Below, piece by piece: positions 2,585 through 32,714 of a stretch of 64,000 bases of DNA. Source of the DNA: Chlorokybus atmophyticus (taxonomy: Eukaryota; Plantae; Mesostigma and Chlorokybus algae); assembly GCA_009103225.1 (NCBI GenBank), contig RHPI01002910.1:299159-363158 (forward strand). The letters run 5' to 3'. The notes under the pieces are model-generated. The model worked only from the letters and a program-made list of their open reading frames with translations. It made no database searches and was not told the origin of the DNA. The first letter of the stretch is position 1; the number at the start of each line of letters is the position of its first letter. The translations under genes were made by a program, and so were the position numbers.

Positions 2585-3764
2585 TAGACCCTACTACTAC
2601 GCAGCTTTCCACTGCTTGCTGAGCATGTTGCCTGCTGCACGGCAATGGCGCCTCGGTCGTGGCGGAGGCGGAAGACACGGCGGCGGAGGCGGATGCAGGA
2701 AATTAGGGTAAGCTTAGCAGGTAACTTATGCGTGAGCGAGGCTCTCGCGTTCCAGCGACCGCAGCTGTCTTGTCGCGCTGCACGCGTGTTTTTTGGCGGG
2801 TGGTCGCTCATGGCTCCATATGGACAAGACTGCAGGCGGCAAGCTGCGGCGCTTGCTTGGCTCAGGCGGCAGGGCGAAGAAATTGAGGTACTTGTATGTG
2901 CGGTATGCAAATATTGATGTGTGTGCAGGCATCCGTATGCTTGTTCCTTTCTTGCAGCGCGGTGTTGTACATAGGTTCAGGCAGCAAGGCGGAGGTTTCA
3001 AATGCCTGCTGAGCTTATCTGAGCATGCGTTTTGCGAGCACCTTTGTGGTTCAATTTGCCCGCATTAGGTGGCCCTGGCATCAGTAAAAGCGCGTTTACA
3101 CAGCATGGAGATTGCGCTTTTGGCCGTAAGTGCTCGAGTACCGGTAGGCAGTGCTTTTCGGCATGTCATGTCACGAGTCAAAGCTAGCGTGCTATTGACA
3201 CCGTTGCTGAGCTGGCTTATTGACGGTCTGACTGTCAGCAGCAGGCATGCTCACATGAAGTCAATCGTCCTTCCTGTACGCGACGCTACGCTGCTTGTGA
3301 TCGTTGCAACCAGCATGGACGACTTGTACGAGGCAATGCGCGTGAGTACGCGGACGGCAAAAGTAGCTGCCGTCGCATCCAGCGGAAGCCCCTAGACGCC
3401 CTGGGCTGTCGTGGTTAATGAGGAGAGTTGACATCGCCCCAAGCCTGCACAAGGACGTCAGCGCCGTACGTTCGCAACGCAGCACTGTACGAAGCGTTGA
3501 TCAGCAACGCTATGATGGCGAATGAATGGGAGAGCTATTTTGGGGCCGCGCTTGGCAAGCAGTTTGGCATAAGAAGCGGGCACTTTCCAGCGCAACTTCA
3601 AGTTGCAAGTTTGCGCGTATGTTGGCATGCTTCAACGCTACAGGCAAGTTGGCTTGTTGGCCTACTGGCATGCGTTTCGCTGGTTGGTTCTGATCTTACG
3701 CACTCGACTTGTGTGATTGGTCAGGTTGCAAACTTGCAGCTCAAGTCGTCGCTCAACGTTTACC

Positions 3765-4133
3765 ATGCGCTTCAGCAAAAGCCTGCTGCCGACATGGCTA
3801 GCGCCACTTGCAACCGCTTTACTGCTGCTCGCCTATGCAGTTCACGCTCAAGTTGTTGTGAGGTACGTGCAACAACAACTGCGGTTACTGAGCAGCTAAT
3901 TTCAAACGTCAAGCATACAGCATCTGGTGTTGAGTTAAGTGCAAGCAATCTCATGCCTCAGCAGTGTGGTCCAGCTTAGTGGTTGGCGTTGCTGACATGT
4001 TGGCCTGCGGCAGGCAACCTGGCTTTCAAGTGATCACTGTGTTTGAGGGGCTCGACTTCCCGACATGCGTCCGTTTTGCACCAGACGGGCGTGTGTTTGT
4101 CGGCGAGAAGGATGGTATGTGGTGCATAATGTG

Positions 4134-4174
<41 letters not shown>

Positions 4175-7100
4175 GTGAGCAGGACATTGAATGCCATAGC
4201 AGTGCGGTTGGCAGGCGTTGTTGTCGTTACACTTTGTGCTGGCAGGCCTTATAAAGGTTTTTTCTAGCGTGACAAGCACAGACCCACCTGTCGTTGCGGT
4301 CGATCTAACAAATGTGAGTTGACGAAGCCAAGCCCCTGCGACCCATGCTGCACGTGCGCTGACCTGAGTAACGAAATTTCATTTCAACCAGTTGGCTGGA
4401 TGTTGCAGGTGGTTGACACACCGGGAGACCGAGGCATTCTTGGAGTAAGCATAAGACCAACAATGACACCCGAGGGCTACTTGCAGGTAAGGCTGTGGCT
4501 GTTAGCACTGGCTGCGGTTAGCCCAGCTTGATACCAACCGCTGCGCCTTTGTACACTCAGATGTACGTGACATACACTGTGCGCGTTGGTGCCAATGTGT
4601 GTGCCGTGGAGCCGTGCGTTGCCAACAGTCGGCTATCACGCTGGACAATTGGTAAGCTGCCACAGCACATTATATTTATCTTGAGTGTCACCTGGCTTGG
4701 TCGGCTGACAAGCTAGAGCAACCCGTGCAGGTCCTGACAGCCAGATTGTACCTGGCTCGACTGAAGAGATCCTCATCGACAATGTGGGGTGCCAGGTACG
4801 CAAGGCCTTTGTGACCTTCTTCGCAGTGCACACGGCCTCCTTGTGTGTGTGTGTGCGGCAAACCAACGCCCTGCACTCCCGCAGGAGTTCTACTCCCACA
4901 GCATTGGCGATTGCTTTTTTGATGAAGCGGGTGTCTTGTACGTGGCAGCGGGCGAAGGTGCATCTTACTCCGCCGTTGACTTTGGTAAGGATGACACCCT
5001 GCGCTGTGTGTGCGTTGTCACTACCGCAAGGCCATCCCATCGAGTGAAAATGTCAGGGCGTATAGAACATGCTTTGCTGTGCCACAGTCAACGGTTGACT
5101 CACTTGCTGACAAGGAACCCTGTGCCGATGGCAGGAAACCTTGGTAACCTGTGTGGTAGTCCACCAGCCACCACACCTGGACAAAATTTAATACCACCAA
5201 ATGCAGAGGGTGGTGCGCTTCGAGCGCAGCATTACAGGTACATTACCAAGCGGCATTGCTGCAGCCTACTCTTAGAGTGTGCATCATGGCATGCTTTGTG
5301 TGTTAGCTATTGATTTCACGGTGCATGCCAATACAAAAGTTATTGCGGGCCAAGCTTTGCTGTCATGTACGGTACAACTTATGAGGTGCCTCGGTTATAA
5401 GCATACCGTGTGCTCATGCCCTAGGTCTGGTGACCAGACTGCTTGGCCTATTTTTAAGATAGGCCATGTAATATGGTATGGTACAAGTTGTACTCCCATG
5501 CAGTGCATGGCAACCAGACGCAACTCACAGAGCATTGTTGTTTGTTGCAGGAGTGCCATTACACCTTGGCAGCCAGCGTACCACGGTTCAATGCTGAGGT
5601 TGAATGCTCTCGATGGGACAGCGCTCAATTCCACTGCAGGGTTTAAACCTGGCGATACCAGCGGTCGCAACAGAATATTGGTGAGCTGCTGACGCTGAAT
5701 AACGGTCTGCGGTTGTATGGCCCTTGGTGATGTGCCATCATGGAGCCATCCAATAAGCAAACGACTAATGTTTGACCAGTTCTTGATTTGGCAATGCAGG
5801 CTTATGGCATGCGGAACCCTTACAGGTAAGCCTCAATGTTGACGCTGACTGTGGGGTGCATGCCCGCTGGTCATGGTCAACCAAATTGCTTGTTTTATCA
5901 TGTCTGTCAAGCGCAGTGTGTCTGATGCACCTGGTACCTGACATGCAGGGGCTGTGTTCGTCCAGGCACAAGTGAGATCTGGTGGGGTGTTGTTGGTGAC
6001 AAGTAAGTAATACATGCCCCAATAAGTAGCACATACTTCTGCTGGTCATCATAGTGTAGCAGGTTGCCTGTTGCTGAGTGACCCTTTGATCAAACAGTAC
6101 CTACGAGTCCATCAGCGTCGTGCAGAACCCTACGGGCACAGCAGCATTGAACTTTGGTTGGCCTTGTTATGAGGTAATACAAGGACATTGCTGTTGTACG
6201 TGAACCTAAAACATCACTATCGGTTTGCACTTCCACTGACCATGGCTGGCAGGGTCCATCCTTGATGCCTGATTATCAAGATGTGAGTCCACCACTGTCT
6301 ATGTGCACATCACTGGATCCAGCAACGTTCACTCCTCCTTTCTATAGGTATTGCTATGCAAAACACAGTGTGGTGCGTTTAACTTAACATGTGCTCCCTG
6401 TTCATTGATTGCCTCTGTTGACTTCCCTTGCAGCTGGAAGCACAGCGCCCCTCCCAATCCAGATGGCTTGTGCTCGGCTGCCACTGGCAAAACGGGCTCT
6501 GCAATAAGTGCTTTGCAGTTTTACAACGGACCCTACTTCCCAGGTAATAGGCATCTGCTCCACAACCACACTTTACTCAACCATTGCATCTACTGGCTGA
6601 CCTTGCTTGTCATGCAGCCCAATACAAAGGAGCCTTATTCTTTGCTGACTACGCCATTGGCTGTGTCTGGGCAATGCTCAAGGGACCTACAGGGGCGCCC
6701 GATCCCAACAACATCGTCACGGTAATTGATGGGATTGCCAGCGTTGACCTTCAGTCGGCACCACTGTCTCTCGGCGGTGGCTTGTATACAGGTATACTTC
6801 GGAGATGCCTTCAGCCTACAGTCCTGCCTGCCCAAACCCTTGCCCAGCACATAGAAACCCAGCCCTGACAGTAGTTGTTAGTTGTTTGGTTGCTTGGTTG
6901 TGTGTGAGTGCTTGGCGCGTGTGTTGCTGTTGCTGTTGCTGTTGGTTTGCCTACTCTCATTCTCATTCCCATACCTGCGCAGTAAATTTCTATTATGGGG
7001 CGATCTACAGGATTGCCTACAACAATGAGCCGCTGCTGTACGCGGCAATTGTTGTGGACACTCTGTACGGCGTGGCGCCGCATGCCTGTGATTTTGATTC

Positions 7101-10100
7101 GTCGCAATCAGCTGGCAGTCCGCCCATCACAAGTTACGCATGGGACTTCAATGGCGATGGTACTACTTTTGTGCCAGCAACAGCGTCGTAGCTGGATTAG
7201 CAGCCCTTGAGAGCACACTGCTTACACATGTGGCTTGCCAATGACACTCGCACTGGATGCAGGAGTGACCGAATCAACAGCAGCCTCTGCCACTTACACA
7301 TACACAGTCGCTGGCGTATATCAAGCTCGTTTGACTGTCTTCAGTAGTGCCACGTCCGCCACAGCGACTAAGAAAATCTCCATTCTGAACTCCAACAGTG
7401 ATTTGCCCACTGCGGCCATCACTTACCCAGCAGATGGTGGTTCATTTGTGGTCAATCAGGTCTTTGACTGCACAGCCCAAGTCGGGCCCGCAGGTGCGGT
7501 GGCATCCTGGCGCATAATCCAATTCCACTGTGCATCGACACAGGTGAGAGTCCACTTCCTACTAGGACTTGCATTGTGCCCTCAATGTGGCTGCTGACCG
7601 GAAATATTGGCAAATCTTGAGTGTTTTTATTGCATCAGGTGGACATCAGCTGCCATACACACATCGTTGCCATAGCGGGGAATGTTCTAACAACGCGGTT
7701 GATTGTGCCTGACCACGCATGGTACAACTACATCCAAATCATTCTGTACAGTACCGTTCCTTCTGGTGCAGTAACAAGTACAGCGGTGAGTACGGCTTTT
7801 TTGCTACCTGAGCAGTCTTGACACTTGAGTCGCTGCATTTCGTTGTTTCACAAACGTCATTGCTTCTGTCTTGTCTGCTGTTGCTTCAGGTGAACCTCTA
7901 CCCAGTGCAAGGTATCTCGCTGAATCATTGATGTCCGCTGGTAGTGGGGTTCACGACTCTGTTGTCATAGTTGTTGCATGTTCACTCAGCCTGGTGTCAT
8001 GAATGTCAGTCCAGCCGGTATGCTGCTCATACTGGGATGTCAGCCAGGCTGACATGCTTTGTGGAAATCCATACCTCCAGCGTTCAGAGGTTGCATGGTT
8101 GTCTCATTTGTCAGCAATACTCAGCCAATACGATTCTTTCACAGTTACCATAACCTACCAGACTGTGCCATCCGGGCTGACTGTGAGCGGGCAAAATCCA
8201 GCTCAGCCTTCTCCATATTCCGTGGTTGGTATCGCTGGATCATCAATCACCATGTCTGCGCAAAGTCCACAGACTCTCAACGGCGTCAGCTGGAAGTTTG
8301 TTCAATGGCAGGCGAGCACTGCTGTGAAACAGTTCTACTTCTCGTGTATGTGCAAAGACACACATGCGCTCGGAAGCACCATGTGAAAACGCGCGCATGC
8401 AACCTGTTAATGCAGTGTGGTGCACATATTTTCTTTTTCTGATTTAGCTGTGCATGTTCAGGATGGAAACAATCAAGCCACACGAGTGGTAGTGAACCCC
8501 ACCACAGCATTCACTTGGACGGCACAATTTCAGCCAGCATCTGTGCCATGGCCACCACCTGCAGCACCACGCGTCTCCTCGCCTCCCCCGACACCTTTCC
8601 CTCCGCCACCTCTTGTCGCCAGTCCTCCACCATCGCCACCACCAACACCTTCCTCTCCAACCAGCCCACCCATCGGTACGATTGCAGAAGTGTCCCTTGC
8701 ACTGCACTGCTCACCTCCTACACTTACCACACAAAACGCCTGGTTGTTACTCGTAACGCTCACCTCTTAGTAATGTCATGTACAGCTTCCTGCTTAACCA
8801 GTAGTAGTTACTCTACACCCTTCAGAGCTTTGCGCGTGTACTCACAAACAACTATTTTGTTAAACCTCATGGAAAACCAGAAGTAGTCTGGATGTACTTA
8901 AATCATCCACAAGCGCTGTATCAACCGTAAACATTTGCTGCGATGTCACCTGTTCATTGATGGTTGCTTTCTTTTTTGCTACCAAGCAGGGAATCTGGTG
9001 GTGTACTTCACACTGACGGACACTGGCTCCACCAATGTGGTTCTCAACACTGCGCCACTTGCCAGATATGGTAATGGCAAGGTGTTTGATTCAGGCACGC
9101 GCGGTTTGGCTGCAGTGAGAACCGGGAATGGGTATGACTTCCAGGGCTTGGGACCAGGCTACACTCACATCAACTTTGGGGATGCTGAAACACCACCAGG
9201 TGAGCCGCGGTGCTATGTGCCCATGTCGCAGTGTGCACTGCATGGTCGGTGCTGTGATTGGTTTGCAAGCGTGCATATCAAAGTGCGTCAGGCTCTTTGC
9301 AATGCATTCGTATGCTGGCATAGCCACATCACCATGGCCATGCTACGTTTGCTATGACTCCCATGGAGTTTGTTGTCATGTTGACTTGATCAATGCAGCC
9401 TGTTTCTATGTATTTGCAGTGCTGACGTTGTCAAGTCGACAAATTACTTTGGCAGCCTTCATCAAGGTGCGACTTTTCCTGTTCTGTCCGTCTAGCATGC
9501 ACATGTGCACGTTGCACACTGCCATCTTGAAGACAACCACCTACACATGTCATTCCAAGCAGGTGCCAACGAAGGTTTTCCCGCCCAATACCTACCAAAA
9601 CGACTATGACATCCTCGCATCTTACCACGGCGGCATGGTTCTACGTTTCTCAACAAAGGGAGGCAACAACTTCATGTTTGGTTCAGCACCGACTGACACC
9701 GGTGTCAGCTTGGTTAACCATTCCGCTGTGGCATTCGTGAAAGCTGCGGATAGAAATCGCTTTGTTCATCTCGTCGGCGTATATAACGGCGGGAGTTACA
9801 GAATTTACAAAGATGGCAAGCTTATTAACGCCAAAGCAGAGAAGATCTCCTTTTCGTCGGTAAGCTGTTCGTGTAAGCAGATGCATCTTGGCGCGCAACC
9901 TGCTTTCGTAATTGTTCAATGCATGAACATACTGTTTGTGAGTCCGCACGCCAACAGACTTGTTAAGTTCAAGTCATCTTTATTCTTTTTCTGTTCAATC
10001 ACCACCTGCACTAACTATGACTTGTCTTACAGTTGACTGGCACGTGGAACGTTGGTAAGTGCTTTTGCTGCTGTTCATTGCAACTGCTTAGTGACATGTG

Positions 10101-10602
10101 CACTTTTAGGTCAATCTGCGTACTGTGAGTTTCAAGCTGTTTGTTCCCCACTTGACTTGGGCCTGCAGGTATGTTTGGTTCGCCATACTTTGAGGCCGTC
10201 AGTAACTTGTTTGCTGGAGTTATCAAGCACGTACAGGTTAGTGACGCGGTGATTACCGCCTTCGTAAGGGTAGGAAGCTGTCAGGAAGGATATGCATACA
10301 GCAGTCTCCGCAGTAAACATCCCTTTTGTTGTGGCAGTCTTTACCAGTGTCCAGATCTTGTAGTAGAACAATGTTCCGCCTCTTTGTGTGTGAGCATCCA
10401 GATTTTAGGCTGCACGTGCTCAGTATTCGACATGAGTGTTTCGAGTTGGATCCTTTTCACAGGATGTATCACAAGTACATGCAGCTGTGTGCTAGGCACC
10501 TTGGTGTTAACTTCAACCTTCAATCTTCTGCAGGTGTATAATACAGCGCTTTCCGCGGCGCAAGTGTCCGCTTTGTACAGCAGTTTCCAGCCAGTTGCAT
10601 AA
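3765..10602 (+). CDS. Secreted multidomain protein: signal peptide + glucose/sorbosone (PQQ-type sugar) dehydrogenase-like beta-propeller + PKD/Ig-like domains + Pro-rich linker + LamG/ConA-like domain; >20 exons
   Basis: Exon 1 encodes MRFSKSLLPTWLAPLATALLLLAYAVHAQ (signal peptide). Spliced exons give GLDFPTCVRFAPDGRVFVGEKDG, GDRGILG, CQEFYSHSIGDCFFDEAGVLYVAAGEGASY, AEGGALRAQ, AYGMRNPYR and NFGWPCYE. PKD motifs are YAWDFNGDG and YTYTVAGVYQARLTV. An SPPP-rich linker lies at ~8540-8670. LamG motifs are FVHLVGVYNGGSYRIYKDGKL and VYNTALSAAQVSALY, with TAA at 10600-10602. Confidence 0.85.
4137..4172. repeat. (TC)n microsatellite in an intron
   Basis: Uninterrupted TC dinucleotide run. Confidence 0.95.
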
Positions 10603-12367
10603 CCTGCCAAATGCAGCTGAGGAGTGTCGACTTTTCCGCTACAATAAGCCTTGGCGACGCCCAAGTCACAATCCAATGAGGCGAGCTGTGGCCAAATATG
10701 GTCAACAATAAACTATCTGTGATGTTGTTGTGAACAGTAGTGGCAATCTGTACTTTCCGTTCAGTTGTGCAAATACCGGAGCTACTGCATAAGATGGTAG
10801 TATGTGTTTGGTGCCAGTTGCTGTGGACACCATTTCAATGTAATACATGCTGTGGTGTGCTGCTGTGCGCAAGTTTTGTGTGCTGCCAGTTTGGTCGTAT
10901 GCATGCAAGAGTGTAGACACCTTGTTACAACTGTAATCAGCTCCAGACGTGCATGGTCTCAGGCGCGTTATCTGCCCAAGCAACTACAAAATGTGCCGCA
11001 AGGTGGATGACATTGCTTGTGACCTGCGCTGTGATGCGCTGCGTAGCGCAATGATACCAAGGTTGGGACACATGCGGGTAGGCCTAGCTGAGTGAGTCCC
11101 GTGGCTGTGCCCCCGTAAATGCTTGTCTCTGTTTCGTAAAGGTAAGTGTCAGTAAGTGTTTGCCCACTCCTACTTGTGTGTCTGTGCAAGGCTCTGCGTT
11201 TGCTGTCTGTGTGCCATGCTGCCGGTCTTGATCTGAAACAGCAGTCTCGGTGTCTATCAGGTGATGTGGCGCATTCAATAGCGATGGCCATGCATGCGCA
11301 GATACCAATCACACCGTAATTTGCTTATCACACTCTGCGTGCGTGCGTGCGTGCGTTGCGCTGCTGGCTGTGAACATAAGTCCAAAATGCTATGCTGTGT
11401 TGTGCAACGTTGCAGTGTCCGAGAGGCATCATATTATGCAGCGGGTACAATGGTCTTGCATGCACGAATGCTGGTTTCGTTGAGATGTGCAGAGCTTTGC
11501 ATCATTGTTGCGCCCTGCTTCTTCTTATGTGCTGCTTCCTCCTGTGGTAGCAGCTGCATATTCTGTGGCAACAGCTGAGCTGCAGATGGCCCTGCGTGTG
11601 CGGCGCCGCTGTTGTGTGCTGATGTTGTATTCCGGGCAACCACGGGCGCCAGTATGTGGTGAGCTAATTGGGTAGGCATTGGTGTGGGTGCAACCTGTGC
11701 TTGTGTCGCCGAAGGGTCTAGTCCCCAAGATGTCCGGTTGATAAACCCCAGGGTGGCTCATGTTCAACATCAGTAGACAGTCTCACACTGGCTGTGTGCG
11801 CATTGCAGGTGGTAGCACGCGCGCAAGTCTAGCCACCGGAGCCTTGGTTGGGCCAAGGCTCACAACAAGGCCCCTGGCGTGGTGATCAGGATGCAGGCTA
11901 CATTCAGTGGCAGCGGACATGGTCGCCACCTCAAAATTGCAGAATGTCATCGACGCAAAGGCAGGTCAAGCGCAGCACTTGCTCTGGGTGGCCCTTCCAT
12001 GTTTCAACGGGGTGCTTGCGCACGACCATCACACCCGTTGCAGCTGCGACCAAAGCCCGAAGCCCCAAGCTGTCGGCGGCGAGTGCCACTCGCCTCGCTT
12101 GCCCCTCATCCTGCACAGCAAACAGCCGACATGGACAGTGTCCGCTGTGCGCATTACAATGTGGTTTTTGAGACTTTACTTGCTGAGTGTCCTCTGGGCA
12201 GTCGAGTATTGTAGCGTACAGTAAATCTGTGGACTGAGTCAAGGTTTGTTCCTCAAGCTTCCTATGAATGTAGTGTGTGGACTCGCTGTATGTGTAGTAA
12301 ACTTCTTACACTATGGTGCGTGTGGGGTGGGGGCGTACAGGATATATGACGTGCTGGGTGGGTGGGT

Positions 12368-12537
12368 NNNNNNNNNNNNNNNNNNNNNNNNNNNNNNNNN
12401 NNNNNNNNNNNNNNNNNNNNNNNNNNNNNNNNNNNNNNNNNNNNNNNNNNNNNNNNNNNNNNNNNNNNNNNNNNNNNNNNNNNNNNNNNNNNNNNNNNNN
12501 NNNNNNNNNNNNNNNNNNNNNNNNNNNNNNNNNNNNN

Positions 12538-12631
<94 letters not shown>

Positions 12632-12636
12632 GGGGG
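12368..12636. other. Assembly gap (N 12368-12537) followed by a poly-G run (12538-12630)
   Basis: Seen directly in the sequence. Confidence 0.95.
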
Positions 12637-13299
12637 GCTCACTGTACGAACGTGCCAAGCTCACTGTGCCGTTGGCAATTTGCACGAGTCATGTGAATGT
12701 TTCACACTGATGTATTTGAGCATGCTGCATACATTACTTACCAGAGTACTAGCCAGGAATCCTTAGCACTGCTTTGTGCGTTGTGGCTTCGTGCGTGTAG
12801 TCCTTGCACTACAAGCGTAGCTTTGTCTGTCTGTATGTGCATAGGCCTTCATATTGCATGTGCACTATAGTAGCAATAGTACACAAATTCATCATGGATC
12901 CATTGTAGCCTTTCAATCCGCCACCATCATGCGTGGTGTGAGCTCGTGCGCAATGGTGCATGTGCTTCCACAACGTCGAGTGGTAAGTACTCTCATGCGA
13001 TGAAAGCCAGGCGCCGGGAGTGGCTGTGTTCATGAATGCCGTTGCGAAACGCTGTTGAGAATGCTCCGGAAGCATCCTTACAGATAGGCTTAGTGGTTGT
13101 GCACAAGTGCGCGCAGTATCAATGCGCTCACTCAAACGCAAATGTAATGCTTATGCACGACCTGCGCATAACACGAATATTTACGCGCAGCACTGTGGTG
13201 TGCTTCATTACTTAAGCATACACATGTACACATGTACACATGAACCCGGTGGTCAACCTTACAATGGTGTTGTTGGTATGCGCTATGTCTCTCTGCAAT

Positions 13300-13533
13300 G
13301 TCGGGTCACGTTGTCTCGGGCCGCTGGAAGGACAGACATGCTTGCTGGACATGCTACTGCAGCATGCTGTAGCATGTTTGGTGGTGTTAGCAAAAGCAAA
13401 AAGATAATCGAGCTCTTGTAACAGCAGGTGCTTCCAAGAGCACGTCCCCCGATGTGGAGGGGTGCGGACATGTGGAGCGAATCTCCTCTTTAGCATACAT
13501 GCTGTGCTGTAGGACACACAGTCAACAAGCCAC
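13300..13533 (-). repeat. Repeat B2 (outermost 3' repeat), direct copy of 14132-14359
   Basis: gggtcacgtt..ggacagacatgcttgctggacatgcta..gcagcatgctgtagcatgtttggtggtgttagcaaa..atgtggagcgaatctc..caacaagccac is present in both copies. Confidence 0.9.
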
Positions 13534-14110
13534 TACTATTGGTAGTGCTGTTGACACAGTTCTTTACATGAGCGGAAAATGTGTTACACTGTTAAGTGAG
13601 TTGAATGAGCAAGCAACACGTGGATGCTATGCCCTAACGGATGCCAACAAGCACACCGCGACCAAGTGCACCAAGCCCACAGCAACGACAAGCACGGTGC
13701 ACACAAGCATGCACAGAGTCTCGAACGGTGAGGGGATTTTTGATTACGAGGATGGCGTGTTCATAGTTCAAGTCGCTCATAAGCTCCTAGCTTTCTCACT
13801 CACAGTGTCACCAGCTGATCCGGTAAACACCGCAACTACTTATACAAGTCAAGTCATGACCGTTCAGAACACAAGCTAATGGTTATATCGGGGCTATTCC
13901 CATAAGAAACTCCCTCTCGACATAGAACATAACGTGTAACTGAATGTACAACTGAATCAGCTACGCGCGGTGCCTATGTAGGCTACGGTCATGAGCTAGC
14001 TACTGGTCAGTGACGTGCGCGGGTTGGTATGCTGATAGTTCGGGCGAGGGTCTTGATGTAAGCATGCCCGATGCCCCAGGCTGGCACACGAGGACAATAG
14101 GCATAACAGC
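13521..14110 (-). repeat. Repeat A2 (LTR-like, ~590 bp), direct copy of 24008-24614
   Basis: Colinear match over the full length (e.g. acacagttcttt.catgagcggaaaatgtgtt.cactgttaagtgag; ctacgcgcggtgcctatgtaggctacggtcat; gagggtcttgatgtaagcatgcccgatg). Roughly 85-90% identical by eye. Begins TGT on the element strand. Confidence 0.92.
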
Positions 14111-14131
14111 TGTTGGGTCAAGGAGAGTCGA

Positions 14132-14359
14132 GGGTCACGTTCTCTCGTGCCGCTGAAAGGACAGACATGCTTGCTGGACATGCTATTGCAGCATGCTGTA
14201 GCATGTTTGGTGGTGTTAGCAAAGCAAACAGATAACCCAGCTCTGGTAACAGTAGGTGCTTCCTGAAGCACGTTCGCCGATGTGGAGTGCTACGGAGATG
14301 TGGAGCGAATCTCTTTTTTAGTATATATGCCGTGCTGTAAGACACAATCAACAAGCCAC
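14132..14359 (-). repeat. Repeat B1, between the PHD finger and A2
   Basis: Direct copy of 13303-13533. Confidence 0.9.
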
Positions 14360-14439
14360 CCCGCTGAGCCTCTGAGGAGGTTCCAGCTCCAGAGCTCAGT
14401 GTTTAGCGCGTTTAGCGAGTGTGGAGGGCCGTCGGCGCG

Positions 14440-14574
14440 GCAGTCATCACACAAGTACTCCTCCATGGGTATTGCATCCAGTGGGGGCTTCAGACAGTAG
14501 CAATGCAAGCCCCTGTTGCAGCCATTGCAGAGCATCATAAGCGAGTCGGCGGCGGCGCTGCCGCAGCGCTCGCA
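14440..14574 (-). pseudogene. PHD finger (C4HC3) at the C-terminus of the retroelement Pol
   Basis: CERCGSAAADSLMMLCNGCNRGLHCYCLKPPLDAIPMEEYLCDDC has all eight Zn ligands. It follows the integrase C-terminal region. Confidence 0.92.
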
Positions 14575-14649
14575 ACGCGTGCTGCGGGCGGGGTGAGGGT
14601 GTTTGATGCGCCAGAACCCTGCTATGTAAGGGAGGTGACAAGGCGCGTA

Positions 14650-15600
14650 GTTCACCATGTTTTCCTTCAGCCTCTCGCCATTCTAGCCGAGGAGGTCCAT
14701 TACCCCTGTGGGGTACACTTTGAGCACCTTGTAGACTGTGCGGCCAAGGAGGTGTCAAGCGCGTCCTTGGTGGCCTCCATGCGGTAGGCAAAGTCTCCTG
14801 GTTGACACCGGTGTTGGCGCTCTTGATAGAATCCACTGCGCACGCGCTCATAGCGTAGCGTGTCGCGGTGCTGCGCGATGCGCAAGTTGTTGAAGGCCAT
14901 AGGGACTGTGCGCTCAAATAGTGATGCGCGCGTGATAATGTCATGGTGCATCCAGTCGAGGTCGTCGAGGTTGTTCACCACGCGATCCACCTCCTGCTGT
15001 GCATGAAAAGGAAGCAGCGGCGGTCGCTTAAACGGTACATAGTACGGACCATACTCGCGCAGAGCTGCCTGCTTGACAGTCCGTATCCAAGAGCCACTCT
15101 TGGGAGGTGGTCATGCCAGGTGTTCTTCTCATACTCCAGCACACACTTGCGGAGTGCCTTCTAGTTGGTCTGCACCGCGCGCTCGGCAAGACCATCAGCT
15201 TTGGGGTGATTACGCGAGGTACAGTGATGGTCGATGTAGCACCTGTCCAAGAGAGTGTCGAACTCCCCTCTGAACTCAATTCCTTGGTCGGTGATGACCT
15301 CTACGCAGCTGCCGAACCGACTGAGGACATGAGAGAGGAAGGCTTGAGCCACCCCCTACTGCTCTTGTCGGGTAGTGGCACAAGCTCCACCCATTTGGAG
15401 AAATGCTCGATCACTATTAAGATGTAACGGTTGCCGCGTGCCGAGGGTGCTAAAGAGGGCAATGATGATGCTTTCGCGTGTGGCCGGTGTCGGCACCTCC
15501 TTGTTCACCATGGAGGCGACGATACAGCTTGTCGTCCGCCCAGCGGTAGTGCTGGGTGCGTAGGTTGACGCGGTCCTTCTCACGCACTTATACCGAAGGG
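14650..15600 (-). pseudogene. DDE (rve) integrase, frameshifted; N-terminal HHCC zinc region apparently deleted
   Basis: NRYILIVIEHFSKWVELVPLPDKSS; AFLSHVLSRFGSCVEVITDQGIEFRGEFDTLL; SRNHPKADGLAERAVQT; C-terminal LRIAQHRDTLRYERVRSG...FQPGD-like segment. Confidence 0.9.
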
Positions 15601-15929
15601 AAGCTGACTACTTTGAAGAAAGGTGAGGGATGGCTTGTCCAGCCATATGTTATGCCTGATGTCGTTGGGTGTTAGCTCTGTGTCATCGACCTCAATGTCG
15701 CCACCATGAGTGGTCTCTGCGGGTGTGGTGGTTGCGGAGTCAGTGGGCTCAAAAGCAGGTACTGCGTTCAGTTGTTGCTGAGGCACCGGCGTCAGTGTTG
15801 CGCCCTGAGCGCAACGCGGTGACAGCAGACATGGCAACCACGGTTGGAGCTGATGATGCAGCGCCGAGCTCATGCCGAGCATCAGTTGCATCGTTGATGC
15901 TCAGGTTGGGGTTACAAATGAGTCCATCG

Positions 15930-17170
15930 GCGTCTTGGTTGGTGAGGCCAGCGCGGTGGTCAATCTCGAAGTCATACTCTTGCAAGGTCCAGTGGGCAAG
16001 TTTGCCAGTAAAATGGTTGGTCATCGACCAACTGAATGGCTGATGATTGGTGATTAACTAAAACTGTCGGTCGAAGAGGGAGGGTCGAAAGAAGGAGATA
16101 GCCCACACTGCAGCGAGACACTCTCTCTCGTAGCTGCTGTAGTTGACCTCGGCACTATTGTTCCTCCGGCTGGCGTACGACACCCCTCTTTCTTATTTGC
16201 ATCGTGCTGCACCAGCATGGCTCCCATCCCGAGCTTGCTCCAATCGGTGTGAAGGATGAAAGGCTTGGTGTAGTCAGGGCGCTGAAGGATGGGTGCTGTG
16301 GTGAGCCTGCTTTTCAGCTCCTTGAAGGCCCACTGTTGCGGCTCCTTCCACACGAATTTCACTTCTTTCTTCAGTAGCTCGTTGAGGGGTCGCGCTATCT
16401 TTGCGATGTCCTTCACGAACCGGCGATAGTAGTTGACAAGGCCCAAAAAGGCGCGCAGGCGCGTGAGGTCCGTTGGAGCAGGGATAGCTGCTCGGGCCTC
16501 CACCTTTGCCTGCTGTACGTACACACCGTGGGGCACAATCATGTGTCCCAAGTAGCGTACCTTGTGAATGAAGAAGGTGCACTTGTCGGCGTGCACAGTC
16601 ATCCCCACTCCCTTGAGCCTCTCCAGCACCTCATTAATGTGCTGTATGTGCTCTTCGTTTCTGCGGCTGAAGATGAGGATGTCGTCGATGTAGCACCGCG
16701 CGTTCAGCCCCTTCAAGGCTTTGTTCATCACCCGCTAAAACTTGGCGGGGGCATTCTTCGGCCCGAACGGCATCACCTTCAACTGGCGGTTGCCCCAGAA
16801 GGAGGTCTTGTGCTTGTCCTCGTCTTTAATGGCGATTTGGTTATACCCTTAGCGCATGTCGAGGATGCTGAAGACTGTGCAGTCTCCTACATCGTCAAAG
16901 ATGCCCTCTGCTGTGGGCATTGGGTACCTGTCTTGTTTGGTCTTGTTGTTGAGGGGATGGTAGTTGCCGCACATGCGCCGTCCTGTCCAGTTGCCGAATC
17001 CTTTTTTAGTGGCATGACGGTCGCGGCTGCAAAATCCGATGTGGACTCCTCAATAAGGCTTGCGTCTAGGAGCGCCTTACATCTCTGTTCCACCAGATCC
17101 TCCTCTAGCTTTGAGACCATATATTGCCGTCGAAACACCGGCTTGGTATCAACCACCTCGATGTCTGGTA
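15930..17170 (-). pseudogene. Gypsy-type reverse transcriptase + RNase H (in-frame stops)
   Basis: PVFRRQYMVSKLEE..LLDASLIEESTSDFAAATVMPLKKD; RMCGNYHPLNNKTKQDRYPMP; VMPFGPKNAPAKF; CYIDDILIFS; FLGLVNYYRRFV; PILQRPDYTKPFILHTDWSKLGMGA; QEYDFEIDHRAGLTNQDADGL. Confidence 0.97.
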
Positions 17171-17479
17171 CACTGAACATGTACCCAGCTCCTTTACGGC
17201 AAAGCCAAATTGGCTCCTCCACTTCTTGAGGAGAGCCTCCAGCTTTTCTCATATGTCCTCCGTGGCAAGAGGGCCAATGGCGTGGTCTCAAGACGTTGCG
17301 TTGGCAACCACGAGGATGTCTTCCACTGTCACTGCTGCTTGCTCCTCCATGTGAACCACCTCAAGGGCTGTGTGAGCTGCCTTGGTGTCTGCAACGCGTT
17401 CAGCCCACCCCCTAGCCAGGTGTTCGAGATCGAAGGACACATGGCGAACCTGCAATGCGAAGCTCATCTCCAACATCCA

Positions 17480-18975
17480 GACCATGCTGTTTTGGTCCAT
17501 GGCGTGGCCGAGTAGCTGACATTGCTAACTGTTGGTTAGCGGGACCCTGTGATGCTGTTGGAAAAAAATCCTATGGCGTGTTCGCGCTCACGTGCGTTGG
17601 TTTCTTTTAGCTTGCTCGTCGTGGACGACGGGCAAGCTAAAATGTAACGGGAGCAATAATAATAGGGGTATTATTGCTACCAAATTAACACATTTTGTAT
17701 GAATAAGTATTTAAACATGCTTATTTATACCTCTTTTCTACGATTCTTCGCTTATTAAAGGCTATGATGCTTGATCATAGCTTAAATAAGTCCCAATGGG
17801 TGTAGAAGCGCTTATTCAAGCCTATTTAGTGTCACATTTCATATAATGTGATCACTATCTCGTCAGGTACCTTACGATAGGTATCTTTGGATAGGTACCT
17901 TATCGAAATGTACCTTATCTGAGATGTGATTGGCTCACGCTAGATTTCCTAACTACCCTATCTGTAGGGTCGATGTCTAGTTGTGAGTTAATTATCGAGA
18001 GGTATATAGTTGATATACTCTTGATATAAAAGGTCACATCAATGAGATGTGGGGATTTTCAGTTCTCTGCTCAGTGGCGGCCACACCGTTGAAAGGCTTG
18101 TCATATGCGGTGTGGGTGTTGGGGTAGAGGATTGAAGGGGCATCACCGGCGACGGTGGTGCTGTTACACAAAAGGTGTTAGACACCATGCCATCGCCTCG
18201 ATTGCGGAAGGCATAGGACCCGAGGTAGGACACCAAAGTGGGAAGTGCGCGGCGCGGTTGGCCAGGTTGGTTGCCTTAGTAGAATTGGCTGTGGTCAAGA
18301 CATGTGAATGGTTGACTCTGCGGCCGGGTTCGAGAATGTCATCGACGAAGAGGTTGCGTGTACTCTGCTGTCATCAGCTCCTCTGTGGTGGCCAAGTTTG
18401 CCCACTTAGCGCGCACGCGATGCGCACGGGAAGCATGGCGCGCTGCGTTTACCTTTAATAGATGCCAAAGAATGGAGCACACCATCCGGTAGGTGGAGGC
18501 TACATGGGGACGCTGGTTGTCCTCTGAGTGCACGTTCTCAAGGACGTGGCCTGGAGATCTGGTGCTGTTGGAGGAGGTGGATGGCTCTCATCAACTCTCA
18601 AAACAGACCTAAGCGAGGGTTGTTCAGGCCTTGGCCTCTTCCTACCCTCGAGTGTTCTTGGCACTCCCATCCAGCTATTAACAAGTCGATGTTGCCAAGG
18701 GACAGCAAGTGGTCCTCTGTGATTAATCTGATGTCTTGTAGCCATGCCTTGAGGCTGCCTTGCAGTGTCGACGAGGGCAGTTGCTGTGGATAGCGCTCGT
18801 GCAGCTGACGCAGATGGTGCTTAAGGGCTGTTTGAGCGCGCAGGTCAGGGTCGTAATTATAATACTTGGTGACTTTGACACCTGTATTGAGGACTGCAGC
18901 GAGACCACTGCCGATGCCTCCAAACAGTTCGAACACTGTGATGCCTTGCTGCCGCCGAATGGTATGGAACTTCAC
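17480..18975 (-). pseudogene. DNMT3-like C5-cytosine DNA methyltransferase domain inside Pol (between protease and RT), interrupted by a solo LTR
   Basis: Motifs occur in canonical order: I VFELFGGIG (18910-18930), IV LLIAGWECQ (18658-18672), VI VLENV (18531-18539), VIII AARHASRAHRVRAKWANL (18393-18425). Beyond the insertion are IX ETNARERE-HAIGF (17566-17604) and X QLLGHAMD (~17495-17515). Confidence 0.9.
17643..18168 (-). mobile_element. Solo LTR (526 bp) of a second LTR family, nested in the DNMT domain
   Basis: Termini TGTAAC...GTTACA. Flanks TAAAA/CAAAA (5-bp TSD with one mismatch). AT-rich. Inverted homolog of 32194-32714. Retroelement coding sequence resumes on both sides. Confidence 0.85.
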
Positions 18976-19279
18976 GACTCTTGTGGAAGCGCGAAGTGAT
19001 CAGCGGCTGGGTCAGCAAGAGGTGCGCGTCCACATGTGCCCGCCAACGGTGTTCGGCCGGGTCTGATAATGCCACCTCATTGTGGTATCCTCCTTAGTGC
19101 AAGGAGTGGGATCGGCGTTGTCTGCGCGGCAAGGGGCTGCGACGGCAGCGCCTCTTGTGCGAGTGTTGTCATTTGTGGCTGATACCGCCTCCCGTGTGCG
19201 CACGCAATTGCGCATGGTTATTGCAGCCACTTTGCATTGGGCACGCGTGCGTGACACCAACTCAAGAGGCAGGAAGCTC

Positions 19280-19690
19280 TGTACTTCTCCGTCATCTCCA
19301 TCCCAATGTGGTCGGAACCACGCCCGCTCTGTCCAGTAGTCAAGGCCCATACCCACGGGAAAGTCCTGTCCAAGCAGGAAATCGAAGGAGCCAGCGCTGG
19401 TGACCACGCATTGCTGAACGATCTCTATGGTGTGGGTCGGGTCCAGCCCTATCAACCGGATGCTAAAGGCCTCCTCGGTGACCCCCATCACCTTGTCACG
19501 GCTCCTCGTTAATGTGTCCAGTACGTATGGGCAAGGCATCAAGTCCAAGCTGGTGATGCCAAGGGACCGCACGAGGAAGCGCCCGATGATAACCGGCTGT
19601 GCTCCAGTGTCCAGCATCACCCGCTTGGGTGCCAGGCCATTGATGGTCATATGCTTGCCTTGGTTGGCTACCATGGCAGCGTTGGCGTTG
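19280..19690 (-). pseudogene. Retropepsin-type aspartic protease
   Basis: HMTINGLAPKRVMLDTGAQPVIIG (DTG at ~19603-19611)...FDFLLGQDF (ILG-type motif). Confidence 0.88.
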
Positions 19691-21899
19691 ATGCGTAGCC
19701 TCTTTGTGCGAGCTGTCGGCACCGATGCCTCATGTCTCTCAGCTGATCAGCTGAAGGTGCTAAGCGCATCGCAGCCAGAGCTCCTCTGCCTGCTGGATAT
19801 TGCAATTGACTACCCCCTCCTTGTCCTCTCCCTTTGCGAAGTTGACTTGTCGTGGTGGTTGGTAGACTCGGGGAGGCCTTTGCGCTAGGGGGTTTTGTGC
19901 TGGCTGCGGTGGAAGTGATGGTGGATGCCGCCTTTGAGAGGATGGGATCATGCCTGTCGGCGTCCCCAATAGTTGACGAGGAAAGCCCGGCAAACCCGGT
20001 GTTTTCGGGCCTGCCTCGTGTTCTGCTTGCTCTGCGGTGTAGGTCCATCGGACAGCATGAGCTGCCTCCCTGACCAATGTCCCTTCTTACGAGGCTGTGG
20101 GCTCTGTGTCTACATTGGTCCAGTGCTGATATTGTGGCATGGGCTGCAGATATACTACGCGCAGTAACCGCTGCCGCATGTCGTGAGTAATGGTGGGGAC
20201 TCGCAAGATCCCTGCCATGTAGGCATCCACATGCCTTGTACCACGCCCACATCGAGCACAGTCATGGCGCGCGCTCGTATGGTGCGTTGAGGGTCGGTTT
20301 ACTGCGCGTGTATTTCGTGAGCGATAGCGATGTGCCGGAGTTGCCGTGCTGGTTCTACTCCCAGCAGCCGCAGCATTGCCTCCTGCACTCCCTCCAGAAT
20401 GTCTGGCGCACTGGTGGTAGCTTCATCGTATGCTTGCCGCATCGAGCGGATGAATGCCCCCAACCATGATGCTATGTTGCCAAAGGCGAACATGGGAACA
20501 GCGGGGTAATTGGCGACGAGCCACGTCACGAGTTGTGCTCAAGAGGCGCTGCCTTCTCGCATCCCCATCATCTGTCTCAATACACTGCCTCCAGGCCGCT
20601 GCAGCATGACGGCTTGCCGTATGAGAGCGGTTCGGGGTTGTTGCTCTCCTACCATATCAGCTCCTCCTTGCTGGGTGGTGTCTCCTTGTGGGGTGAGGTA
20701 ACCTCGCCCTGCATCCCGGTGATCATCAGGCATACCATCGATCAGAGGGGGCAATAGCGGGGCAATTACCCCCCTCAATTGTTGTGCCAACGCCCTCGCT
20801 TGGTTAGCAACATTTGTTTGCCCTGACTGTGTGACTGTGGTTTGCGCTTATGGCACAACGGCTAGTGCAGTGCAGGTGCCGGCGACATCTAACGGTCCCG
20901 TGGGTTGAACCGCAGCGGTGCGTGCTGCTTCATACACCTGTCGGCGTGCGTCAACTTGGGCGGCTTGATCTTGCCGATAGCGATGTGCCTGTTCAAGCGC
21001 AGAGAATTTTCCTGTGACTCCCCTATGTGAGTCCACGGAGTGCCGGGTCAGCGCCCGGCGGCATGTTTGAGGTGGTCACCATGAGGCGCTGCACTCGGCG
21101 ATGCTGATGTCCGTGCCGGTCCAGCGGTGAAGGCTTAAAATCAATTTGTTGCGCTGGCATGAGCTGTTATGATTGGTTGGGTGCGTTTTGCAGCCTTGCG
21201 TGCACTGCCAAAAACTGAATTGCCAGCTCCAACACAGCGAGGCGCCGGTATGTGACCCTGAAGAGACGATCTCTCCTCTCCTCTCCTCTTATCTCAGGAG
21301 CAGTGCCAGCTAGAATCTCATCGTCCAATTGTTGCTAGGTGGGCTCCGATAGTGTATGGTATTCGAGCGGTGGTAGCGGCAGGATGCAATTATCTCGCGC
21401 TACATGCATTGTGCGTCGCCCCCCGAGCCTGTATGCAATGGTGGTGGGCTCGATGTTGCATAGGACGGACACCCAAGCGCGCTCCGCTTGCGGTCCGCGT
21501 GGTACTTGTTGAGTGACATCAAGGTGCGGAGGAGGGGCCGCACGAACCCCTGATGGTGCGGCGGCAGTGACAGCAAGGGCTGTTAGAGGTGCGGCAACAT
21601 CAACTGCAGCAAAAGTTGTGGCACGTGCAACAGTCGTGGTGACGGAGTGAGCATTGCAACAGTCGTGACAGGGGCAGTGTCCGCAGCTGTAGCGGGTGTG
21701 GTGCCAACACCACCAGTGGGTTCGCCAGCCATGGCTGCAGCATCCTCAGTGCCAGTCATCTCTAGCGCCAACTTGGTGCTAGGTGTATCCGCACTGGCTG
21801 CACTGGTGGGTGTTCTCGTCGACGGGGTCGTCTCAGTAAAGGTTGTGGCCGGCGAGCCAGCCCCACTTGTAACTTCCAACGATGTTGCTGTTGACGATG

Positions 21900-23796
21900 C
21901 GCCTGCCTCTTTACGCGCACATCTTTATGGTTGAACACGCGATGGCGATGGGGTGTCTCTGTTGCGTTTCGGTGCCATCCAGGCCCATCGGGCAACGTAG
22001 CAGGCTTGGTAGCTTTGCTCCTTGTCTTCTTCAAGCTGAGCCACTTGTGCTATAAGGGCCGCGACTAGGTTGACAGCTGATGAGCTGGCTGATGCTTTTA
22101 TAGCAGCACATCCAATGCGCGGGCGTCCCTCGGGTCCCTTGCGCTGTGGAGGGCGGTTCTTCCCTCCGTAACTAGTTCCCTGTTTTCAAGCGCCGGCGTG
22201 GTTGTTGGGGTTGTGGCCGCCAGCGTTGTTGCCGTTGTTGTGACCACCAGCGTTGTTGCTATTGTTGTAGCCACCTGCGTTGCTGTTGTTGTAGTCCCCG
22301 CCGTTATTGTTGTTATTGTTGTTGTTGCTGCGATAGCCACCAACGTTGTTACTGTTGTTGTAGCCAATAGAGGGCCGCAGCTCGGGGAACTTGAGCCAAC
22401 ATACTGCTTCCAAATGTCCCGTCTTGTGGCAGTAGTCGTACACAAAATTGCCATACTCTTCGGTGCACTCCTTTTAGTAGTGTCCATGTCGACCACATTA
22501 ATGGCACAGCACTGGAGCAACAAGGGCAGCATAAGCTGACCGTTTGTCCTTGTTGTTGCGCGTGACTTGAGCATCCCGACTGCGATCTCGTCTAGGGGGC
22601 TTAACACTCGCTTGCTATGGGACGCGAGGCGCTCTGGTTGGTGTCCAACACTGCCTTCTCATACACCGCACGCTTGTGAATGGCTTGTGCAGTCTCGAAA
22701 GCTTTCTTGAGGGTGTAGCCGAGGGGTCTACTGCAGTTCAGTGTCAAACGCGTCGACTCACTAAAGGTGGGGTCCAACTCAGCCACGTACACCATTGCGG
22801 CTGCCTCTTCACTAACGATTTTGTAATCAGTGTCCTTTAGTAGTCCTTCTAGCCGCGAATACACCCGGAGAGGGTCCTCGTTGGGCTTGCGTCGAAAGAG
22901 TCTTTAGATCCCCCACCTTGCTGGTGGTCTGAGACGGAAGGTACGCCGCAGTGCTGCTTACAAGTCCTTGAGAGGAGAGTCCAACATGATAGCACCAATG
23001 GTGATGGCTGGCGCGCAACGCTACCGAGCAAAGTGGGAAAGGGATGACTCCTGCCGGAGTATGCGAGCCCGGTGTTAGCGGTACTGGTGTCCCCGTTTCC
23101 AAGGCTGCAGTTTGTTGTTTAGCCTGCTGAGCCTCAATGATGGCAGCGGTGCGGTTAAGCACTATGATCCGTCGGTTGGCCTTCTTGACCTCGACCTTTG
23201 CAGGTGTTAGCGAGGCAACAACCAGCTCGGCTTCTTTGTCCTCTGCTCGTTGCATGGCTAAGGCTAACGCCCGACCGGTGACTGGGGTTGGAGGGACCAC
23301 TGCTGCTGAGGCAGCAGCTGCTGGGCTATTCGTCGGTGCAGGTGCTATGGTGCTGGCAAGCTCGCCATAGCCATCGACTCTGTGCAGCTCAACAATGGAC
23401 TTTCACATAGTGTGCCTTATGATCAAGGTATTGCGCCATGATATGGAATGACACTTCATCTGACCAGTCCTTGTTCTTAAAGGCTTGCTGCCGTATCTTG
23501 GAGTGGAACTTGATGATGACTTCATCAAGTGGTGTGGTGCCCGCACGTCCAAAGAAGCGCAGGGTGTTGGTTGAGCTGGAGGGCTCCATTTCTTCGTCGT
23601 CATTGTCCGAGGGAGGTGGAGAAGCTTGATGGCAAGGAGTGAAATGGGAGGAGGTGAAGCCGGGATTAGGGCGTGAGCCTCTGCTGCTACGGTAACTGCC
23701 TCCTTCACTTGCTCGTTCGTAAGTGGGGTTGGAGGTCGAGCTCCAGCTGCTGAGGTCCCCCTCGTCCATTGGCGAGAACCGGGTGGGCCTGCTCAT
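21900..23796 (-). pseudogene. Gag-like region: capsid-like segment, degenerate CCHC knuckle, G/N-rich low-complexity tract
   Basis: DLKTLFRRKPNEDPLRVYSRLEGLL (retrotransposon gag-like); (Y/C)DYCHKTGHLEAVC knuckle at 22399-22440; NNSNNAGG-type repeats at 22200-22370. Confidence 0.75.
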
Positions 23797-24007
23797 ACAG
23801 CTGATGCAAAGATGAAAGTATATGATGGGTAGAGTGTTTGTGCTCTACACGGTTCTCGCAATGCCGCTACCACTCACCGCATTAGTGCTTGTGCGCACTA
23901 TGTGGTGAAAGTGATAATGTTGCACGAGGATGTATCCAATTGCAAGCGGCACTTCTGATGTGCAGGATGCAACCACACTCACTTTAGCAAAGAGGGTGAC
24001 GCTGTGA

Positions 24008-24614
24008 GTCAAGAAGCCACTATTATAAGTAGTAATGTTTACACAGTTCTTTGCATGAGCGGAAAATGTGTTGCACTGTTAAGTGAGGTGAATGCGCAAG
24101 CAACATGTGGATGCTATACCCTGACTGATGCCAACAAGCACACCGCGACCAAACGCACCAAGCTCACACGAACGACAAGCACGGTGCACATGAGCATGCA
24201 CAGACTCTCACACGGTGAGGGGATTCTTGGTAACCACGACAGCGTGTTCGTAGTTCAAGTCGCTTCACAAGCTTCTAGCTTTCTCACTCACAGTGTCACC
24301 AGCTGATCTGGTGAACACCGCGACTACTTATACAAGTCAAATCATAACTGTTTAGAACACAAGCTAAAGGCCATATTAGGGCTTTTCCCATAAAAAACTC
24401 CCCTTTGATATTTAAACATAACATGTAATTGAATTCACAACTGAAACAGCTACGCGCGGTGCCTATGTAGGCTACGGTCATAAGCTAGTCCAAGGTCATG
24501 ATCTAGCCATTGGTCAGTGACGCGCGCGGTTTGGTATGCTGATAGTCCGAGCGAGGGTCTTGATGTAAGCATGCCCGATGCAGGCTGGCACACGAGGACA
24601 ATGGGCATGACAGC
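24008..24614 (-). repeat. Repeat A1 (5' terminal repeat of the retroelement)
   Basis: Direct copy of 13521-14110. It is not accompanied by a B copy on either side. Confidence 0.92.
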
Positions 24615-32193: not shown

Positions 32194-32714
32194 TGTAGCA
32201 GCACCACCGTCGCCGGCGATGCCTCTTCAATCCTTTGCCCCAACACCCACACCGCCTGAGACTAGCCAAATTACACCGCCGGCAGCATGGCGCTGCAAGG
32301 GATAAAGATAGATGATGATCTCATCTATTAATGGGGCCTCTTGTATCAAGAGTACATACATATCATAGTGTATATATATCGCAATGATGTCTCTCAATAA
32401 TAAACTCATAACCTCCAATAAAGCTCCAATTTCAACGATAAAGTCCCCAGCGATAACATATTGATAATGTATCTAGCAACGAGGTACCGAACTTAATGTC
32501 TAACTATATGGATCGCATATATGAATGCGACACTTAATGCTTCAATATGCGGTTCTACACCCATTGAGACTTACCAAAGGTATGATGGAGCATTATACCT
32601 TTGGTAATACGGGCCTTTATAAGCAAAGAACCGTAGAAAGAAGTATAAACAAGTATTTACAATGAAATTTGTTGTTTTAATAGCAATAATACTCCTATTA
32701 TTGCTCCCGTTGTA
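32194..32714 (+). mobile_element. Solo LTR (521 bp), same family as 17643-18168
   Basis: TGTAGC...GTTGTA termini with a perfect 5-bp TSD AGTAT on both sides. Colinear with the reverse complement of 17643-18168 (cagcaccaccgtcgccgg.gatgcc.cttcaatcct; ctacacccattg.gactta; tagcaataatac.cctattattgctcccgtt). Confidence 0.88.

Follow-up and report, generated by a model that had tools for sequence, protein, structure and literature searches.

Does the cytosine methyltransferase domain that appears to lie within a retrotransposon of the alga Chlorokybus atmophyticus belong to that element, and what would it do there? The question is raised by positions 17480-18975 of a 64,000-nucleotide stretch of contig RHPI01002910.1 (the whole of which we call the window), where a sequence-only reading had recognized a Gypsy-type retrotransposon encoding its own DNMT3-like enzyme between protease and reverse transcriptase (RT). 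Our analyses make it very probable that this stretch is the methyltransferase (DNMT) domain of an old, dead Chlorokybus Ty3/Gypsy copy in the green-lineage Gypsy-DNMT3 group. By stop-to-stop translation, Pfam searches, and alignment to intact relatives, we delimited a Ty3/Gypsy retroelement of ~11.3 kb on the minus strand (~24614-13303) with split end repeats and the layout gag-PR-DNMT-RT-RH-IN-PHD (PR, aspartic protease; RH, RNase H; IN, integrase). Its assignment to Ty3/Gypsy was borne out by Pfam for PR, RT, and RNase H, by tblastn to the rve/Integrase_H2C2 of intact polyproteins, and by a Pol in which PR and then RT-RH precede a DDE integrase, colinear with those polyproteins.

A C5 cytosine methyltransferase domain occupies 18969-17435 on the minus strand, between the protease and RT. 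Motifs I, IV, VI, and VIII, the target recognition domain (TRD), and motifs IX and X are present in canonical order in a reading frame that is broken in the window copy, and each of the six numbered motifs was found on the element strand where it had been predicted. The N-terminal part of the domain (18601-18999, minus strand) holds motif I (FELFGGIGSG) and motif IV (AGWECQEHS) with the catalytic Cys. The middle part (18177-18587, minus strand) holds motif VI (VLENV) and motif VIII (SRAHRVRAKWANL; AHRVRAKWANL), which together span 18587-18342 when the pieces are read in order, and the TRD (ALPTLVSYLGSYAFR; ~18260-18180). The C-terminal part (17435-17622, minus strand), which is 52% identical to residues 1280-1304 of P0179, an intact relative, consists of motif IX (NAREREHAIGF, with the core EREHAIGF; 17622-17554) followed by a frameshift and motif X (QLLGHAMDQN; 17542-17435).

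The PF00145 search that had been proposed as a check gave 23.6 bits (E 4.2e-5) for the N-terminal piece, above the gathering cut-off of 22. A family profile built from 148 full-length relatives scored the pieces of the window copy much higher, with 144.7-156.8 bits for the N-terminal piece (E 7e-46 to 1e-49; 156.8 bits over 18969-18547), 99.5 bits for the middle piece at 18566-18177 (E 2.7e-32), and 16.4 and 4.5 bits for the remaining pieces; motif X was matched at E 5e-7, and motif IX and the TRD were likewise located with this profile. Given these scores and the order of the motifs, we conclude that the motifs are real and far beyond chance. Two assignments were rejected, those of TTANSTKATN...FPLW as a DNMT3 TRD and of VSNVS as a match to DNMT3A, since by the family profile both motif IX and the TRD are encoded in different frames. 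The placement of the methyltransferase directly after the protease and ahead of RT also held, and the protease and DNMT share one frame. P0179 aligned to both as a single high-scoring segment pair of 431 residues over 19725-18541, with one stop between the two domains.

All comparisons pointed to a DNMT3 type. The N-terminal piece (18999-18601) matched only DNMT3C, DNMT3A, and DNMT3B in the PDB. A profile of 36 sequences (A2) searched against the PDB reached DNMT3A at 6.5e-25, then DNMT3B and DNMT3C, followed by DRM (1e-15), M.HhaI (6e-10), and DNMT2 (1e-5); DNMT1 was not reached in this search at E <0.01. An AlphaFold model of the DNMT domain of P0180, another intact relative, had a pLDDT of 94, and the top 50 Foldseek matches of this model in the PDB were all DNMT3A, DNMT3B, or DNMT3C, with TM scores to target of 0.81-0.85. 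The likeness to DNMT3 that had been seen in motifs VIII and X was also upheld, with AHR.R..W.NL common to both and motifs IX and X matching. PWWP and ADD reader domains are not present between PR and RT, where we found the catalytic domain only. As judged from homology and a predicted fold, what the element carries is the catalytic domain of a DNMT3-type C5 methyltransferase in non-rearranged form, lacking the PWWP and ADD domains of host enzymes.

Since the window copy is broken and an unrelated insertion lies inside the domain, one might suppose that a single copy had captured a fragment of a host DNMT3 gene or that an assembly or nesting artifact had joined two elements. We rejected both possibilities, to which we give almost no credence, because the shared frame of PR and DNMT in the window, intact ORFs (open reading frames) of relatives, other copies in the same organism, and the agreement of DNMT and RT trees all oppose them. 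When the 125-aa DNMT ORF of the window was searched against 1.84 billion representative proteins, it matched 584 protein clusters at E <1e-3 and 189 at E <1e-10, the best match being only 50% identical. Many matches were long polyproteins, and several were uninterrupted single ORFs of natural origin with the same domain order as the window element, among them P0071 (2188 aa), P0166 and P0167 (2318 aa), P0179, and P0180 (2358 aa, ending in a PHD finger). The named hosts of these relatives were Closterium species, Mesostigma viride, and the chlorophyte Monoraphidium neglectum, with the rest being metagenomic; homology and named-protein searches for Klebsormidium proteins among the relatives returned none. 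In a public run from the same organism that contains the window sequence, 338 contig pieces were at least 80% identical to the 3.8-kb stretch at 16000-19800, 13 of them at least 99% identical, and several cover the DNMT part. The clusters, the intact polyproteins, and these diverged copies carrying the domain support a family-wide enzyme.

The metagenome contig that holds P0180, the closest full-length relative (L007:1-18357), has a period of ~8.26 kb: one 123-aa ORF is found twice (2124-2495 and 10386-10757), and polyprotein genes occupy 1-2010, 3196-10272, and 11457-18356. The source of this periodicity is either a tandem array or a single element whose assembly is circular or collapsed.

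Relatives containing both DNMT and RT fell into two layouts, 22 in which DNMT precedes RT, as it does in the window element, and 85 with the order RT-RH-DNMT-IN-PHD. One branch separates the PR-DNMT-RT and RH-DNMT-IN layouts, with SH-aLRT support of 99 in the DNMT tree and 100 in the RT tree, and the window element lies on the PR-DNMT-RT side in both, nearest to P0172 (56% identity in RT). Both trees were unrooted quick searches without host DNMT3, in which the window pieces were read with X at the breaks. Within those bounds, the trees show DNMT and RT as co-inherited since the layouts split, and they give neither the direction of change nor a single capture. The proposal that PR-DNMT-RT-RH-IN-PHD is a distinct lineage was not sustained as something new: this layout, which separates cleanly in both trees, is one of two within a large green-lineage clade and marks a sub-lineage rather than a separate kind of element. 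We offer as a tentative and rather doubtful view that Gypsy-DNMT3 is an old, widespread green-lineage clade (Chlorokybus, Mesostigma, Closterium, Monoraphidium, and metagenome contigs), mostly with Glu-Cys in motif IV, in which a single captured DNMT3 may later have moved within Pol to yield two stable layouts and in which DNMT and PHD may act as a writer-reader pair at integration.

The copy in the window is old and dead. Quite apart from the insertion, its DNMT domain is disrupted by at least four frameshifts and by in-frame stops, of which there are at least two. Two of the frameshifts, around NLFVDDILEPGRR (~18367-18326) in the middle part, compensate each other, and that part also has in-frame stops. 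The remainder of Pol is frameshifted as well. Because it is broken, this copy cannot do anything itself. A MITE (miniature inverted-repeat transposable element)-like insertion of 525 bp splits the domain between the TRD and motif IX. The interruption, previously placed at 17643-18168, is real, and we refined it to 17644-18168 from residues 1278 and 1280 of P0179, which align on either side of it, and from two contigs of other family copies in the public run, one of which passes from 17604 to 18182 across only 26 letters and the other from 17624 to 18201 across only 21. As these contigs skip the insertion, the domain is uninterrupted in other copies. The termini of the insertion are TGTAAC...GTTACA, and TTTTG/TTTTA may represent a 5-bp target duplication. 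A second copy of this ~520-bp non-autonomous element, 66% identical, lies at 32194-32711, and the AGTAT on both of its flanks suggests a 5-bp target duplication. The ~520-bp element also carries a subterminal hairpin, AGCAATAATA...TATTATTGCT. Adjoining the insertion at 17605-17642 is a 38-bp palindrome, 89% self-complementary, of which one arm codes for DNMT residues (TTSKLK) and the other is an inverted duplicate; this palindrome may have been left by repair when the element inserted.

We counted residue conservation over 134 relatives, which are only ~40% identical to one another. The catalytic Cys and the Glu of ENV occur in 134 of 134, the two Arg residues of the motif VIII RxR in 133 and 131, and the S-adenosylmethionine (SAM)-binding motif I is retained across the family. 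Between P0166 and P0167, dN was 0.116 and dS ~1.7 (saturated) for DNMT and 0.072 and 1.8 for RT; as dS was saturated in every pair compared, a dN far below dS is usable qualitatively and the ratio is a rough bound. Judging from these substitutions, the DNMT domain in the relatives is under strong purifying selection. Motif IV of the window copy (18675-18689) reads G-W-E-C-Q, with Glu-Cys in place of the canonical Pro-Cys, which is near-universal in motif IV of C5 methyltransferases. Of the 134 relatives, 91 have Glu immediately before the catalytic Cys and 39 have Pro, across both layouts. Since Glu is common in relatives of both layouts, the Glu-Cys of the window copy is a family trait and not decay.

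We consider it probable that in intact copies the domain methylates cytosines in DNA. Several points weigh against the broader interpretation to which this belongs. Glu-Cys replaces Pro-Cys in motif IV, no Gypsy-borne DNMT3 is known to be active, and cleavage, packaging, and the choice of cDNA, target site, or RNA as substrate are inferred. The link to KnitGypsy-Dnmt3, a Gypsy element of Klebsormidium nitens, probably holds on architecture, repeat layout, and DNMT3 type, which stand in for a direct alignment. Furthermore, the Klebsormidium domain is described as producing no methylation in yeast, a result that its authors call inconclusive (PMC5890265). This last result, together with the Glu-Cys of most relatives and the poor conservation of motif X described for DNMT3 members of K. 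nitens (Supplementary Fig. 13, PMC5890265), would also be expected of a catalytically silent pseudo-enzyme like DNMT3L, which could serve as a DNA-binding or scaffold part of Pol or could recruit or block host DNMT3. However, DNMT3L-type pseudo-enzymes lose such catalytic residues as the Cys, the ENV Glu, and the RxR that are invariant or nearly so among these divergent relatives, which also keep motif I, and human DNMT3B was likewise inactive in the same yeast assay (PMC5890265). A pseudo-enzyme is improbable on balance.

The other parts of the element, all on the minus strand, surround the methyltransferase as expected of a Gypsy polyprotein. The gag region (22100-23844) is decayed and was recognized from open stretches and a zinc-knuckle-like remnant, with relatives having zf-CCHC at the corresponding place. 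A 27-nt tandem repeat in gag (22198-22366) encodes an Asn/Gly-rich low-complexity stretch (NNSNNAGG...). The aspartic protease (19015-19746) matched PF13650 (E 2.4e-6; 28.6 bits versus a cut-off of 24.3) and aligned to the PR of P0071, P0179, and P0180. RT and RNase H (15785-17162, in several frames) matched PF00078 (E 1e-14) and PF17919 (E 1e-16), were 51-62% identical to the relatives P0172 and P0180, and include the YIDD box of RT within 16734-16057. The zinc-binding and core regions of a DDE integrase (14727-15504, frameshifted) were 53-72% identical in tblastn to the rve/Integrase_H2C2 of P0071, P0179, and P0180. Since Pfam gave nothing useful on the short broken pieces of gag, integrase, RNase H, and middle DNMT, these assignments rest on alignment to intact relatives.

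A C-terminal PHD finger (14293-14682; PF00628, E 1.2e-9) follows the integrase and is intact within a Pol that is broken elsewhere. Among solved structures, it best matches the PHD fingers of ATXR5, UHRF1, KMT2D, UHRF2, and BAZ2A, followed by the KDM5 family. Several of these fingers bind H3 tails that are unmodified or unmethylated at K4.

The end repeats, also on the minus strand, run B ... A-B-A in element orientation and are split direct repeats rather than a plain pair of long terminal repeats (LTRs), giving the window element the DIRS-like split-repeat arrangement of the Gypsy-DNMT3 kind. The 5' copy of B (24007-24614) is 85% identical to the 3' copy (13520-14110), and the first copy of A (14132-14359) is 88% identical to the second (13303-13533). 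A search of the element for the palindrome GACAGCTGTC did not find it; instead, the related 10-bp palindrome AACAGCTGTT sits at the A-B repeat junction (14105-14114), its single occurrence in the element. This junction resembles two LTR ends placed head to tail, as at a two-LTR circle junction. An assembly gap of 170 N lies at 12368-12537, followed by a long poly-G run.

What the enzyme would do concerns the intact relatives and not the window copy. In our model, the methyltransferase would be made within Gag-Pol and carried together with RT and integrase in the particle, and it would use SAM for de novo cytosine methylation of newly synthesized double-stranded cDNA or of the new site of integration. 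A new copy would then enter the genome already bearing a host-like methylation mark, while the PHD finger of the integrase may steer integration to chromatin with unmodified H3 tails. The element's own cDNA as the main substrate falls somewhat short of an even chance. Our results do not fix the substrate and would also fit an enzyme that instead methylates RNA, depositing m5C on the genomic RNA of the element, or host DNA flanking the insertion. The presence of a PHD finger in the polyprotein suggests that the enzyme works at chromatin, and RNA methylation has been raised for a LINE-borne DNMT (PMC5890265). In contrast, the TRD and predicted fold are those of the DNA-methylating DNMT3A, DNMT3B, and DNMT3C rather than of DNMT2, and related DIRS-borne DNMT3 domains are reported to methylate CG in DNA (PMC5890265). 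We regard RNA or flanking host DNA as an unlikely substrate.

Retrotransposons bearing the enzyme that hosts use to silence them represent a striking takeover of host epigenetic tools by a parasite. A single dead locus adds little on its own, and the window copy adds Chlorokybus, among the earliest-branching streptophyte algae, to the list of hosts. Together with its relatives, it points to a large group that is under selection, probably predates the acquisition in a single lineage that was proposed in 2018, and has two fixed places for the enzyme within Pol. The intact natural relatives provide material for proof of Gypsy-borne DNMT3 activity.

Elsewhere in the window, a host ORF on the minus strand (54858-58058) consists of a single exon encoding 1067 aa with LPDG-type repeats (DUF6799). 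The ORF is 100% identical over its full length to a C. atmophyticus model in EukProt (jgi/Chlat1/8194/Chrsp76S07631), which identifies the host as Chlorokybus and rules out Klebsormidium. That model is 1171 aa long and also has EF-hands. The nearest named relatives of the ORF are scattered and include Nocardia PIN-like proteins that share the repeat.

Compared with known systems, neither a DNMT in Gypsy Pol nor the idea of cDNA methylation is new. Both were published in 2018, with intronless DNMT3-related domains described in the Pol of the K. nitens Gypsy element KnitGypsy-Dnmt3 and retrotransposon DNMTs proposed to methylate retrotranscribed cDNA (de Mendoza et al. 2018, PMC5890265). A 2026 preprint counts "streptophytes (Gypsy-DNMT3)" among known transposable element-borne DNMTs. 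Our literature search found no paper combining Chlorokybus, Gypsy, and DNA methyltransferase.

Among other retroelements, chromoviruses likewise carry a chromatin-reader module at the integrase end, but the reader in the window element is a PHD finger (PF00628) of the predicted unmodified-H3-tail class instead of a chromodomain, and chromoviruses lack a DNMT. With host DNMT3A, DNMT3B, and DNMT3C (PDB 2qrv, 6u8p, and 8tci), the domain shares the order of motifs I-X, the fold, the AHR.R..W.NL of motif VIII, and motifs IX and X, whereas it is only ~22% identical, lacks PWWP and ADD, mostly has Glu-Cys in motif IV, and is embedded in a retrotransposon polyprotein. SymbioDIRS-Dnmt3 of Symbiodinium, as described in 2018, also encodes a DNMT3-type domain within Pol, has split repeats of the A/B type, and occurs in two domain orders side by side; its domains methylate CG de novo in yeast (PMC5890265). 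Unlike the window element, SymbioDIRS-Dnmt3 belongs to the DIRS elements, with a tyrosine recombinase instead of a DDE integrase and an unrelated RT lineage, and its dinoflagellate host represents an independent capture.

KnitGypsy-Dnmt3 is the closest parallel in these respects. Its copies are placed in the DNMT3 clade with key residues conserved and Ka/Ks <0.2 (PMC5890265), and according to the Fig. 4c legend its repeats are DIRS-like though its domains are those of Gypsy (PMC5890265). The window element differs in that its host, Chlorokybus, is a much earlier-branching streptophyte and in that this copy is dead. Otherwise, the two are alike in being Gypsy elements of streptophyte hosts with a non-rearranged DNMT3 domain in Pol, catalytic residues kept, apparent purifying selection, and split repeats.

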